Assembly: GCA_002104905.1 (NCBI GenBank)
Contig: MCFE01000346.1
Coordinates: 25,852 to 89,851 of the forward strand
Reading direction: 5' to 3'
DNA: 64,000 bases
From: Basidiobolus meristosporus CBS 931.73
Taxonomy: Eukaryota > Fungi > Basidiobolomycota
Part shown: positions 12,545 to 57,300 of the stretch, piece after piece
Position numbering within the stretch: the stretch's first letter is position 1
How the letters are laid out: every line of letters starts with the position of its first letter
The notes under the pieces: generated by a model
Database searches by the model: none
The model's input: the letters and a program-made list of their open reading frames with translations, nothing else
Told to the model about the DNA's origin: nothing
Translations under genes and position numbers: made by a program

Positions 12545-13391
12545 TTCTTTCTTCCACGGTCAAAGCGAGGAGCGGGCTTGACTCCCGGTGGATAAAAAAT
12601 TTATTTATCATACCATTCTTTCCTCCACCGAATCCCGCAGTAGGTGATCGAGCAAGCGGTGATGGCCCTGATTTCTCCATTCAGTCAATGCTAATCAAGT
12701 CACAGGTGGGGTGAGGAACATAGACGGGGGCGTTGGTTGGTCCAGGTAAATATGTACTTGGGACAATACTCGTTCCGATATATTATAGGAATGAGATGAT
12801 TTGAAGGATCAGGAGGGCAGATGGTTTCGGAAAAATTAGGCCTATCCTGAAGAAGCTCCAGCACTATGACCCAACCTCGATCAATAATGCCATTTCGATG
12901 GGATTGCTGGAATGTGACAAGCTGGGGTTTGGATGTAGCTGATGGTTGGAGGGAAATAAAATGCTGAGTGGCGTAACTATGCCGGCATGTCCGTTGGGGT
13001 ACTGTTCATCGCTCATTAGGTGCAGTAGCAATGTTCTGATGTACAGCCGCCTCCTGCACTCTTGAAAGACTAGCAATTTATATCTCGCATTTGAATGCAG
13101 AAATGAATGGTGTGCTGAAGGATGTGTCTTGTTAATAATATTACCATATCTACAAAGCGCTTCAGAGTGAGTCTCGAAGAGTAACCCCAAGTAGCGCGCC
13201 TGATCCGTCTGAGGAACGGATCTTTTGGACCATGTATCTAATATTCCACTTGCTTTCTAAGAAATCCCAACCCGAATTTGACAGCAGCAAGTATTCCATA
13301 ATTGGTTGAATGTGTAGGCACGTCCTTGGCGGGGCTTTGAATAGACTAATGAGGAGTGCTCTCCTTCGCTGCTGTGCATACCTTCTTCGAG

Positions 13392-13398
13392 TATAAAG
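13392..13398 (+). promoter_or_regulatory. TATA box upstream of small peptide gene 1
   Basis: TATAAAG 88 nt upstream of ATG 13480, followed by a pyrimidine-rich leader. Confidence 0.6.
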
Positions 13399-13479: not shown

Positions 13480-13614
13480 ATGAATACTCAGGACATCCGT
13501 CTCCTCCTTGCAACTCTGGCTGTTCTGGCTTTCACATCCTATGCAGCAGGATACTCTTTACCAATCAGCGAATTAGAAAGCACATGTTGTGATAAAGGGA
13601 AGCCCTTCGGCTGA
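13480..13614 (+). CDS. Small secreted peptide precursor, CCD family member 1 (44 aa)
   Basis: MNTQDIRLLLATLAVLAFTSYAAGYSLPISELESTCCDKGKPFG*: signal peptide, acidic pro-like segment, CCD core; TATA box upstream; clear similarity to 54402-54524. Confidence 0.7.
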   Translation: MNTQDIRLLLATLAVLAFTSYAAGYSLPISELESTCCDKGKPFG

Positions 13615-13891
13615 TATGGATCGCCACTTTACTCATGATACCCGCACCGCATATCGAGGGCCAGTTTGAACATTTTGTGTTAGGTGATTATTAGAAATTC
13701 AAATAAATGGCGCGCTATCCCATATGACTACTTTCACCTGTCGGCGCGCTTGGAGGAATAGAAGCAACATTTATTGATTCTAACGAAATATATTGTACAT
13801 CCACGGATCTTCCAACCCAGTGGTGGAACCTACTATTATAAATGGGGCCCTGGTCAAACATTATCGGCTGGTAAAATAGCTATAATACAAA

Positions 13892-52666: not shown

Positions 52667-53476
52667 ATGGCAGAAATCGATTTCAGTAGCTACTTTCTCT
52701 TATGCCAGAGCATTTTCTTGATTTGTTTATGTGTAGTGTCTGTAAATATCGGCCGGCGACTTGGAAAATGGATGATGCTTTCATACATCCATACTCTCAT
52801 TCTAACGATCCTTGTCTGTACGGCCATCTTTAATTTCATGGCGGTCACAATGCTCTACGTTAACCAAACTGTTGCACAGTCATGCCAGATATTCGCCTGG
52901 ATCTGTCCGGTCTGCTACCTGGGAACGAAAAACATTACTTACATGTATTTCATGGAGCGGGTGTACATCATCAAAGGGAACTGCACTTCTCGCCTACGGT
53001 TCAAGCTATACTGGTTCCATGGGTTCCTCCTTTTATTGTGCTTTACGCTGATGATCACCGTCATTGTTTATGATACTCACATGCGAAGCAGTGCTGGCTG
53101 CCAACTGCGCTTTAGTTTTTTTACTACCACTGCACTACTGGCCTTCGATTCCACCTTAAACCTGTACCTCACCTTGCTGTTCGTTGTTCCCTTATGCGTT
53201 ACCACCAAATGGTCTCCATATAGGACAAGGTTCAAGAAACTGGCCAAACGCGTACTCTTTGCGTCGGTAGTTGCGCTGTTGTTCACTGTTGCTAATCTGG
53301 TGGTCTGTCTGGCCAAACCCGATTTACTCGATAAGGAATGCCTGCTACTTTGCTGTTTAGATTTGAATGTCAACGCACTAGTAGTGGATTTTTCATCATC
53401 GGCGAAAGTCGAAGATACAACTGAAACAGAGCTCACCACCAGCGGGGTTGCAGGGATCCTCAAAAGTCCTGCTTGA
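52667..53476 (+). CDS. Orphan 7TM (GPCR-like) protein
   Basis: Seven hydrophobic segments; Cys at the start of TM3 (QSCQIF) and in ECL2 (AGCQL); MERVY at the end of TM3 (DRY-like position); basic ICL3 RTRFKKLAKR; intronless. Confidence 0.75.
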   Translation: MAEIDFSSYFLLCQSIFLICLCVVSVNIGRRLGKWMMLSYIHTLILTILVCTAIFNFMAVTMLYVNQTVAQSCQIFAWICPVCYLGTKNITYMYFMERVYIIKGNCTSRLRFKLYWFHGFLLLLCFTLMITVIVYDTHMRSSAGCQLRFSFFTTTALLAFDSTLNLYLTLLFVVPLCVTTKWSPYRTRFKKLAKRVLFASVVALLFTVANLVVCLAKPDLLDKECLLLCCLDLNVNALVVDFSSSAKVEDTTETELTTSGVAGILKSPA

Positions 53477-54270: not shown

Positions 54271-54277
54271 TATAAAG
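54271..54277 (+). promoter_or_regulatory. TATA box upstream of small peptide gene 2
   Basis: TATAAAG within gtatttatataaag, 131 nt upstream of ATG 54402. Confidence 0.6.
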
Positions 54278-54401: not shown

Positions 54402-54524
54402 ATGAATTTCCGTCTCTTGGCTACAGTATCCTTGGTTTTGGTCGTGGCCAGCATGGTAACAAGTGCACCAGTTCCCGATGTTGAGAAGCGTTGCTGTGAT
54501 AGAAGACCACCCGGACTTGATTAA
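54402..54524 (+). CDS. Small secreted peptide precursor, CCD family member 2 (40 aa), Kex2 site before the core
   Basis: MNFRLLATVSLVLVVASMVTSAPVPDVEKR|CCDRRPPGLD*; TATA box upstream; AATAAA at 54574-54579. Confidence 0.78.
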   Translation: MNFRLLATVSLVLVVASMVTSAPVPDVEKRCCDRRPPGLD

Positions 54525-54705
54525 TTTCATTCATTAGCTTTTCTGTCATTAACTTAGCCATAATATCTGCCTCAATAAAGAAGTCAGAAATTTTCCTATT
54601 TCGCTGAGAATTCTGTGGATGTGCAAACTATCCGATTCTACTCGAGGTGGCTTAGGGCAGATCCAGTGATGGCGGTAATCAAGCCAATTCTCGGAATTGA
54701 TCCTC

Positions 54706-57300
54706 ATGACACATTATCTGCGAGTATGGGAGTTGTTAGGATTCGTCATGCACAGATTGGCCATTTTCTACTACAAATACACGGCTAGGGGAGCAGTCCA
54801 AATCAACATGAGACTCCTTCCCAACAAAACAGCGCTTGTTGTGTACTCTTTCCTGATATTGATTTACACATTGACACTGACCACAGTGTTGCACCTTCGG
54901 GAGAGCCTCCCTGATGCAGTGTCGGAGAACGAGGCGAGTGAGTTCTCTGCGTTAAGGGCGTGGAGACAACTTGAGCAATTTGCCGACGAGCCCCACCCTT
55001 TTAATTCCGAAGCAAATCTGAAAGCTCGGGGGTATCTCAGCAGTGTGCTATTAAGGCTCGCAGAACGAGGGAAGGTGCTGAACCGTAATATCGAGTTAGA
55101 CCTACACGATAATACCACCTACACTGGGTTCATCGTAGGCGGAGGGCCTTATATCGGCTGGCGTTACTTTGAATCCACTAACTTGCTGTTACGCATCGAG
55201 GGAACCAGAAAGCGTCGCGAGGCCCTGCTACTTTCTGCTCATTTCGATACAGTACCCTTCAGTCATGGTGTTACAGATAACGGAATTGGTGTGGTGGTTG
55301 CCTTGGAGGTCGCACGTATTCTGATCGAAAAACCGATTGCCGATACTGTGATTTTGAATCTCAACAACTGTGAGGAGACTGGACTTCTTGGCAGTGAAGC
55401 TTTCATGGAGCATCCTTGGGCTAAGGACGTGCGCGCCTTTATCAACCTGGAGGGCGCTGGTGCCGGGGGGAAATCAATGGTGTTTCGCTCCTCTGACCTG
55501 CCATTGAACCAATTCTATTCCCACTCACCATTTCCTCATACCTCAGTTATCGCAAACGACGTTTTTAAATTGGGATTGATCAGGTCCGGTACTGATTTCC
55601 AAATCTATGCCTTTAAACACAATATTCCCGGCCTAGATATTGCTTTTTACAAACGTCGATCCCACTATCATACTCTACTCGACAACCTGAATACTACTTC
55701 CCCTCGCTCGGTGCAGCAAATGGGTGATGCGACCCTTGCTACCACAAGATCATTAGCCAATTCCGAGTATCTCTACAGGGACCCTACCCAGTCCACACAA
55801 TTGGCTATCCATTACGATATCGTGGGGAAAATCACGGTGACACATAGCTTCAAGTGGTACATTGGGCTAAATGTATTCATCCTAATTTACGTTCCATTGT
55901 TCTATATCCGTGGATATCGAAGAATGAAGCGGCAAAATACCGGGAAAAATCATCGATTCACACTCAGAGCGTTTGTCTTGCCGCTCTTGAGGTCTTTCGT
56001 TGCTGTATCAACGACCGTCATTTTCGGCATTCTTTGCAATGTGCTGTTTGGATTTTGCTTGGCAAAGGTGAATGGAAATGTGGTGTATGGTCAGCCAAAC
56101 CTGGTGATGCTCACATTCACTGTAACGACTGTATGGGGATATGCCATGGCCCAATGGATATGGAGATGGATGGAAAGTAGACATACGGGCGGTACTTTTG
56201 TCCTTAAATCGAATCTAAGTCGAGATCGCCTTGCGTTCCATGGAATGATGATCATGTGGTGGTGTTCTACTTTGATTGCACTTGTTGCCAGTGTTTACGA
56301 GCTAGGGGTTTTCTACTATGTATCGTGGCTGACGCTAGCCCATCTTGTAGGGGCTTACCTGTTAGAGGGGACTGAGTTTTGCTGGGGTAATTGGAGTAAG
56401 CCCAGCGCCATTCGAGCATGGATCTGGCCCTTGCGGATGTCGATCAGCTGTATACCGCCGCTTCTCCTAATTGTTGACATTGTCAAGATCCTGGTGGATG
56501 CTACATCCCAGACAGTTGCAGATGGAACACCAGCATTCATGGTGTACGTTTTGTTTTCTATTGGATTTGCTACCTGCATGTTATGTGTAATCCCATGGTT
56601 CCAGAGAGGAGATGGATTCCCCAGCCTATTGGGACTGCTTACAATTTTCAGCATAATACTGATCGTCGTATCTGGATTAATCTTCCCTTACAATTCCGGA
56701 GCACCGATTCGGATCTTCCATAATGCCTACTACGAACCATTAACCGGCAACAAATGGGTCACGCTGAGATCTGCCTGCAATTTGCCTGAGCTGTTAGGAA
56801 AGACCCAGCCAGCCAGTTCCAACCTACACTGCCAACTAGATGGTGGTATATATGAGTGCAGCTGGAACTCTTCAACTAGGCCTTACTTCTCAAAGCTGAA
56901 TAGCGAGGAATCACCTATCACTACTCAGGTAAGCAGGAGTCTCCACTCTAATGAGGAGCATGAAATAGTTCTTTCTATTTTCGCTCCTGAAACGCGTACA
57001 TGTAGTCTCCAATTAAACTTCAATCCCGCTGAGAAGTATTACATCAATGATGACCTGGTTCAGGATGATCTTAGTGGAAGTAGGGCCTACATATTCAAGA
57101 GAGAGTTTGAAAAAACCATCTCCTTGAGAATTATAACCAGGAAAGACGAAGTGCACCCGGTCTCCATCCATTGCTATTACGATGATTTCTCTAAGCACCT
57201 ACCTGCCTTTGAGGGCTTCAAGAACTCGTTGCCAGATTGGTCTGTCATCTCATTGCGCGGCTTTGGCGCATTGACAGTAATCTTTCACGTCGATATTTAA
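54706..57300 (+). CDS. PFF1: M28 family multipass membrane metallopeptidase (Pff1/ERMP1)
   Basis: LLLSAHFDTV, GVTDNGIG, NNCEETGLLG, INLEGAG, SGTDFQIY, HYHTLLD, then ~8-9 TM segments; intronless; start may be 54808. Confidence 0.9.
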   Translation: MTHYLRVWELLGFVMHRLAIFYYKYTARGAVQINMRLLPNKTALVVYSFLILIYTLTLTTVLHLRESLPDAVSENEASEFSALRAWRQLEQFADEPHPFNSEANLKARGYLSSVLLRLAERGKVLNRNIELDLHDNTTYTGFIVGGGPYIGWRYFESTNLLLRIEGTRKRREALLLSAHFDTVPFSHGVTDNGIGVVVALEVARILIEKPIADTVILNLNNCEETGLLGSEAFMEHPWAKDVRAFINLEGAGAGGKSMVFRSSDLPLNQFYSHSPFPHTSVIANDVFKLGLIRSGTDFQIYAFKHNIPGLDIAFYKRRSHYHTLLDNLNTTSPRSVQQMGDATLATTRSLANSEYLYRDPTQSTQLAIHYDIVGKITVTHSFKWYIGLNVFILIYVPLFYIRGYRRMKRQNTGKNHRFTLRAFVLPLLRSFVAVSTTVIFGILCNVLFGFCLAKVNGNVVYGQPNLVMLTFTVTTVWGYAMAQWIWRWMESRHTGGTFVLKSNLSRDRLAFHGMMIMWWCSTLIALVASVYELGVFYYVSWLTLAHLVGAYLLEGTEFCWGNWSKPSAIRAWIWPLRMSISCIPPLLLIVDIVKILVDATSQTVADGTPAFMVYVLFSIGFATCMLCVIPWFQRGDGFPSLLGLLTIFSIILIVVSGLIFPYNSGAPIRIFHNAYYEPLTGNKWVTLRSACNLPELLGKTQPASSNLHCQLDGGIYECSWNSSTRPYFSKLNSEESPITTQVSRSLHSNEEHEIVLSIFAPETRTCSLQLNFNPAEKYYINDDLVQDDLSGSRAYIFKREFEKTISLRIITRKDEVHPVSIHCYYDDFSKHLPAFEGFKNSLPDWSVISLRGFGALTVIFHVDI

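Follow-up and report, generated by a model that had tools for sequence, protein, structure and literature searches.

A probable Basidiobolus-specific family of unannotated micro-genes predicted to encode secreted Cys-Cys-Asp peptides

The terminal 64 kb of Basidiobolus meristosporus contig MCFE01000346.1 (the window, meaning the whole stretch of 64,000 nucleotides analyzed here) carries two very short open reading frames (ORFs) that are likely paralogous stand-alone micro-genes of a Basidiobolus-specific family, with a secretory prepropeptide as their product. A preliminary description of this DNA had proposed an unannotated family of tiny genes with a signal peptide, an acidic pro-region, and a Cys-Cys-Asp (CCD) element, and that proposal is upheld by six intact syntenic members in two species, all evolving under purifying selection. 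The six members fall into two clades, each comprising one ORF of the window, its counterpart on contig MCFE01000580.1 of the same genome, and its counterpart in B. ranarum, which belongs to the other major clade of the genus. That these genes have stayed intact in both major clades and in both B. meristosporus duplicates reflects purifying selection at the protein level.

Results and discussion

Two tiny ORFs with a common layout

Both ORFs, hereafter member 1 (M1-A; 44 codons) and member 2 (M2-A; 40 codons), are present as originally quoted, and among the 1477 ATG ORFs in six frames of the window, they are the only ones of 20-150 aa that contain CCD. The features of the two loci are as follows.

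13274-13287 (+): conserved block GAATTTGACAGCAG, invariant alignment columns between B. meristosporus and B. ranarum
13392-13398 (+): member 1 TATAAAG box, 88 nt upstream of the ATG
13480-13614 (+): member 1 coding sequence, 44 codons plus TGA stop, from the ORF listing and the 44-codon syntenic counterparts
13480-13551 (+): member 1 predicted signal peptide, residues 1-24, maximum Kyte-Doolittle 11-mer 2.79
13552-13584 (+): member 1 acidic pro-region or linker YSLPISELEST, from the alignment, ending in Ser-Thr versus Lys-Arg in relatives
13585-13611 (+): member 1 core CCDKGKPFG, of which CCDKGKP is invariant in 3/3 orthologues
13702-13707 (+): member 1 AATAAA poly(A) signal, 88 nt after the stop
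54271-54277 (+): member 2 TATAAAG box, 131 nt upstream of the ATG, at a similar distance in both counterparts
54402-54524 (+): member 2 coding sequence, 40 codons plus TAA stop, from the ORF and its syntenic counterparts
54402-54464 (+): member 2 predicted signal peptide, residues 1-21, maximum Kyte-Doolittle 11-mer 2.94
54465-54491 (+): member 2 pro-region APVPDVEKR, with two X-Pro dipeptides, an acidic stretch, and a Lys-Arg (Kex2-type) site
54492-54521 (+): member 2 core CCDRRPPGLD, with CCD[RK]RP conserved and the last four residues variable
54574-54579 (+): member 2 AATAAA poly(A) signal, 50 nt past the stop, ahead of the M28 peptidase gene

The TATAAAG that had been reported upstream of each ORF was found at both sites, and all six members have a TATAAA upstream (88-170 nt) and an AATAAA downstream (50-103 nt) that stand as conserved islands in diverged flanks. 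For member 1, GTATAAA is invariant in the three-way alignment despite the divergence of the surrounding DNA, and a TATTAGA..TCAAATAAAT block at its AATAAA is kept across species in a 3' flank that is otherwise unalignable; in the member 2 counterparts, the AATAAA lies 50 nt past the stop on MCFE01000580.1 (L009) and 73 nt past it in B. ranarum (L001). Further short conserved blocks occur upstream of member 1, near 13330-13340 and 13374-13381. Within the divergent intergenic region that separates an ABC1-kinase gene from member 1, GAATTTGACAGCAG, GCTTTGA, and GTGCATAC (13274-13381) are invariant between the two species, making these blocks candidate promoter elements for either the ABC1 kinase gene or member 1. 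The leader of the B. ranarum member 2 orthologue (L001 4100-4200) holds three to four tandem units of ~30 nt (cacctcacagtcactctctaaacaa...) that are absent from B. meristosporus.

The shared architecture and sequence noted for the two ORFs is borne out by several comparisons. Members 1 and 2 match each other by tblastn within the window (E about 2e-3), cross-clade tblastn matches among the compared loci have E values of 2e-4 to 3e-3, and a profile of the member 1 trio aligns to one of the member 2 trio with an hhalign probability of 95% (E 2e-8). To judge from these sequence comparisons, the similarity exceeds chance and the two clades are homologous. What is invariant after the signal peptide is one Pro, a Cys-Cys-Asp eight residues on, a basic residue, and a Pro two to three residues further on. 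In the consensus that had been suggested from the two ORFs, the trailing ".P.G" does not hold, since the B. ranarum member 2 stops after CCDKRP and the tails of the duplicates differ. The pro-region is almost as well conserved as the core (PVPDVEKR is the same in both B. meristosporus copies of member 2, with one V to L change in B. ranarum), which would be unusual for a throw-away propeptide.

Syntenic counterparts and a probably old duplication

A search for further copies, suggested when the ORFs were first described, returned intact syntenic counterparts of both on MCFE01000580.1 and in B. ranarum. Member 1 lies between the ABC1-kinase gene and a gene whose 393-residue product is 100% identical to a protein of B. 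meristosporus CBS 931.73, with the downstream neighbor convergent, and the same two genes flank its 44-codon counterparts in B. meristosporus (MCFE01000580.1; L004:11573-11707(-)) and B. ranarum (L005:6499-6633(-)). Member 2 is flanked by the genes for a multi-pass membrane protein and an M28 peptidase, an arrangement repeated around its counterparts on MCFE01000580.1 (L009:11962-12084(+)) and in B. ranarum (L001:4240-4359(+)). Precursor length across the six members ranges from 39 to 44 codons.

In B. meristosporus, one gene order spanning at least 40 kb is found on two contigs (window 13480-54524 versus MCFE01000580.1) and reads RRM, EamA, the 39x-aa gene, CCD-1, ABC1, Myb ... I/LWEQ ... membrane protein, CCD-2, and M28 peptidase. 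At about 0.35-0.54, the synonymous divergence of the CCD genes between these duplicates points to an old event, either a segmental or a whole-genome duplication.

Several observations concern the neighboring genes themselves. The membrane protein directly upstream of member 2 has 269 residues (window 52667-53476 (+)), and its duplicate and B. ranarum orthologue have 4-5 or more hydrophobic segments in a crude hydropathy scan. It carries a GPCR family profile label in one database and adjoins the CCD gene in both species and in both duplicates; in Pfam it has no match, pheromone-receptor families included. The M28 peptidase ORF of the window (54808-57297) is uninterrupted and, like the B. ranarum proteins, has a length of 830-841 residues; the deposited model of the B. 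meristosporus duplicate (L009 12360-13505), at only 382 residues, is probably truncated, which also accounts for the lack of any B. meristosporus protein among the results of a length-filtered search. A second B. ranarum peptidase paralogue (L002, JASJQH010000436.1, 63% identical) has no CCD gene upstream, meaning that the member 2 gene was either lost from that copy or never there. Likewise, no CCD ORF is found at the loci of more distant paralogues of the 393-aa neighbor (two in Basidiobolus, one in Neoconidiobolus), indicating that the linkage of CCD-1 to this gene is plain synteny rather than a recurring gene pair.

Evidence for coding and selection

Substitution patterns were assessed with dN/dS from Nei-Gojobori counts and with Fisher tests on synonymous versus non-synonymous changes. 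The dN/dS ratio, which the preliminary description had named as a check on the family, is 0.04-0.11 downstream of the predicted signal peptide (Fisher p 2e-5 to 7e-3), and the frame-disrupting changes that it had held would speak against these genes occur in none of the six members, all of which are intact. The predicted signal peptide itself evolves at 0.37-0.57 overall (0.37-0.49 for member 1, 0.44-0.57 for member 2). Between the duplicates, the post-signal part of member 1 has a dN/dS of 0.11; against B. ranarum it shows 10.5 synonymous and 8.5 non-synonymous differences (Fisher p 2e-5), with synonymous sites between the two species saturated. When the duplicates of member 2 are compared, residues 23-36 carry 4 synonymous and 0 non-synonymous changes (p 0.001), and residues 37-40 carry 0 synonymous and 3 non-synonymous ones. 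The third codon position has the most changes.

The member 1 ORF aligns with 0 gap columns and keeps its length and stop position, against 23-85 gap columns in its flanks; between species these flanks are 42-55% identical with 31-85 gap columns in a forced alignment. Of the six frames, only the annotated one is open in 6/6 genes. Taken together, the skew toward synonymous change, the conserved stop, the lack of indels, the single open frame, and the genes' own TATA and AATAAA signals indicate stand-alone, unspliced protein-coding genes. We rejected the idea that these ORFs are initial or sole exons of longer spliced genes, given the conserved member 1 stop, the convergent gene that comes next, and the poly(A) signals downstream.

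Predicted signal peptide, Kex2 site, and mature product

Signal peptides were called with a home-made heuristic based on crude hydropathy and charge rather than a trained predictor, and this rule is passed by 7 of the 190 window ORFs of 35-60 aa, members 1 and 2 among them. At the N-terminus of both ORFs, a basic residue leads into 11-15 uncharged, hydrophobic residues; in member 1, Arg7 lies in the n-region, the hydrophobic core covers residues 8-18, and the c-region ends in A-A-G. By the same heuristic standard, all six members pass for hydropathy, charge, and the -3/-1 rule, with small residues at -3 and -1 after the hydrophobic core in every case, including all three member 1 orthologues. 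Cleavage after this small-x-small site, which we infer from the sequence, would leave N-termini of Tyr-Ser-Leu-Pro... or Tyr-Tyr-Leu-Pro... in the member 1 clade and of Ala-Pro-Val-Pro, Val-Pro-Val-Pro, or Ala-Pro-Leu-Pro in the member 2 clade. X-Pro dipeptides such as those at the predicted member 2 N-termini are removed by Ste13-type dipeptidyl peptidases (specificity in PMC6339444).

Kex2 cuts after KR, RR, or KK (PMC6339444), and Lys-Arg directly precedes Cys-Cys in four of the six members, namely all member 2 genes and the B. ranarum member 1 (...NELDKR). The predicted Kex2 products of these four are CCDRRPPGLD, CCDRRPSEVD, CCDKRP, and CCDKGKPFS. Ser-Thr occupies the Lys-Arg position in the window member 1 and its MCFE01000580.1 duplicate. 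With member 2 as outgroup, Lys-Arg is the ancestral state, and the change to Ser-Thr took place in the B. meristosporus lineage before the duplication. Because CCDKGKP has remained invariant after the loss of Lys-Arg, either cleavage is not essential and a peptide of ~20 residues is active, or another protease acts. Since the window member 1 has no dibasic site, Kex2 release cannot be a general rule for the CCD family.

These data modify what had been predicted for the product of member 1. A peptide of ~9-10 residues had been expected, but with Ser-Thr in place of Lys-Arg a 9-residue Kex2 product is not indicated, and the product may instead be ~20 residues long. The lack of KR in this member had been recognized correctly, and the Ser-Thr accounts for it; the idea that its terminal Gly is an amidation donor did not survive comparison, the residue being Ser in both relatives. 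C-terminal amidation of member 1 was accordingly rejected for want of conservation.

Overall, we envisage a secretory route for these precursors. The N-terminal signal peptide would direct entry into the ER and be removed after the small-x-small site, exposing a short Pro-containing acidic linker and then the C-terminal core Cys-Cys-Asp-[Lys/Arg]-x(1-2)-Pro, the most conserved part. In the four members with Lys-Arg, Golgi Kex2 would release a peptide of 6-10 residues that begins with the vicinal cysteines, and the B. meristosporus member 1 copies would probably be exported as a ~20-residue peptide with the same core. The adjacent cysteines may be oxidized in the secretory pathway to a vicinal disulfide or to an interchain-linked dimer.

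Annotation gap and searches for relatives

The deposited annotations of B. meristosporus and B. ranarum leave the interval between the flanking genes empty at both sites, and the exact peptides of members 1 and 2 are on record as gene products in no assembly. An exhaustive profile search of 1.84 billion protein representatives likewise returned no relatives; its three matches, all translations of tandem-repeat DNA, showed neither a signal peptide nor the family layout and were set aside. There was no match below E 0.44 in Pfam or below E 0.42 among PDB sequences, and no usable match in the ESM Atlas. A metagenome scan produced 92 pattern matches, 0 of them confirmed, and a scan of bacterial and archaeal genomes gave one 11-residue match in a gammaproteobacterial MAG, which was dismissed as chance, its frame being broken by stops and overlapped by real ORFs in other frames.

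Since annotation seldom picks up tiny ORFs, a lack of matches in protein libraries is poorly informative about other fungi. With no relatives found outside the two species, the evolutionary depth of the family is small. On balance, sequence analysis supports the CCD genes as a new secreted-peptide family that has no detectable relatives and lies within a known kind of fungal gene; the biology they suggest is not surprising in kind.

Comparison with known peptide systems

One parallel in this organism is with Kex2-processed repeat proteins (KEPs), and a fungus-wide survey counted more of them in B. meristosporus CBS 931.73 than in any other strain (PMC7329392). By definition, a KEP contains several near-identical peptide repeats split by KR, RR, or KK (PMC6339444). 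CCD genes share with them a predicted signal peptide, a presumed secretory release, and, in four of the six members, Lys-Arg immediately ahead of a short conserved peptide. KEPs, however, have several repeats and are found among annotated proteins, whereas each CCD gene has one core in 39-44 residues and is unannotated, and two of the six CCD members have no dibasic site. Given the missing repeat structure and these two members, the CCD family would work like KEPs but is not a member of that class. A tandem array of ~50 genes for single-core tiny putative secreted precursors with a Cys-containing core DLHDFCGGWFCGHV has also been described in the same genome; the CCD genes differ in being dispersed singles with another core.

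Precursors of the Ascomycota alpha-factor type likewise have a signal, pro-region, Lys-Arg, and short peptide in that order, and single-copy precursors of this type are known (PMC6339444). In alpha-factor precursors, X-Ala or X-Pro (Ste13) dipeptides come after Lys-Arg (PMC6339444), whereas member 2 has X-Pro before it and Cys-Cys directly after. The position of member 2 beside a GPCR-labeled multi-pass membrane protein is another point of likeness, but the CCD peptides have no sequence similarity to the alpha-factor type and carry a vicinal Cys pair in their core. To our knowledge, the CCD peptides have no link to mating.

A third resemblance is to conotoxins and similar animal venom or hormone prepropeptides, which also have a dibasic site with Cys-Cys at the start of the mature peptide. 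Conotoxin-type peptides have four or more cysteines in a defined disulfide framework. CCD peptides share the prepropeptide layout but have only two, adjacent, cysteines, and no homology was detected in the 1.84-billion profile search, Pfam, or PDB. Among fungal peptides that are modified after translation, precursors of ustiloxin/dikaritin-type RiPPs have repeated cores and clustered modifying enzymes (DUF3328/UstYa, tyrosinase, others); none of these Pfam families is present in the genes flanking the CCD loci, and the cores are not repeated.

Alternative explanations

ORFs this short, called by no annotation pipeline, could in principle be chance frames within conserved non-coding DNA, but we give almost no credence to this explanation in view of the synonymous skew, the lack of indels, the conserved stop, the single frame open in all six genes, and their retention after duplication. 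For member 2, a role in cis has to be considered as well: in both B. meristosporus copies, the peptidase gene starts ~280 nt beyond its stop and in the same orientation, as would be expected if the M28 peptidase mRNA carried member 2 in its 5' leader as a conserved upstream ORF that controls translation and yields no secreted peptide. Against this, an AATAAA follows the ORF in all three member 2 copies, the spacing to the peptidase widens to ~790 nt in B. ranarum, the paralogous member 1 has no co-oriented gene downstream (the next gene is convergent), and a signal peptide plus KR is unlike the layout of regulatory upstream ORFs, leaving this option highly improbable.

Two further explanations accept a protein product but assign it another fate, and both seem unlikely to us. 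A leader followed by a conserved short C-terminal core is also the layout of a RiPP precursor, in which enzymes encoded at other genomic sites would add chemical modifications to the Cys-Cys-Asp core, and this fungus is rich in Kex2-type precursors and biosynthetic clusters. Yet the neighbors (an ABC1 kinase, a soluble protein with no Pfam match, a multi-pass membrane protein, and an M28 peptidase) include no adjoining modifying-enzyme families, and known Kex2-type fungal RiPP precursors are repeat proteins, unlike the CCD precursors; we doubt this reading strongly. Doubts are only slightly milder for signal-anchored micro-membrane proteins, in which the N-terminus would stay uncleaved and the 40-44-residue product would remain in the membrane with its CCD tail on the lumenal or outer side. 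The member 2 hydrophobic stretch, at ~15-17 residues, is at the long end for a signal peptide, but small -3/-1 residues are kept in 6/6 members after a core of 11-15 residues, the hydrophobic part evolves 4-10 times faster than the tail at non-synonymous sites, as cleaved signals do, and four of the six members have a Kex2 site. A secreted prepropeptide encoded by stand-alone micro-genes is the explanation that we prefer.

Possible roles and significance

As to what a secreted CCD peptide would do, an extracellular signaling or regulatory role is our first guess; its chief rival, ranked second and equally a guess, is that the Cys-Cys-Asp end binds metal. A more specific proposal, that the CCD peptides are diffusible genus-specific self-signals (a hormone or pheromone with an N-terminal vicinal-cysteine warhead) and that member 2 is sensed by the adjoining GPCR-labeled membrane protein, is a long shot; if true, it would describe a peptide-receptor pair in an early-diverging fungus that is unrelated to the Ste2/Ste3 systems.

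In conclusion, neither of the two reference Basidiobolus genomes available has these genuine, selected coding genes of ~40 codons in its annotation. That one lineage has lost the Kex2 site yet kept the core provides a natural experiment on the need for cleavage, and the very short CCD core makes synthesis for direct assays feasible. Basidiobolus dwells in the vertebrate gut and occasionally infects humans, and this lifestyle, together with the unusual richness of the genus in Kex2-type precursors, makes its secreted peptides candidates for self-signaling or for interactions with gut microbes or the host.
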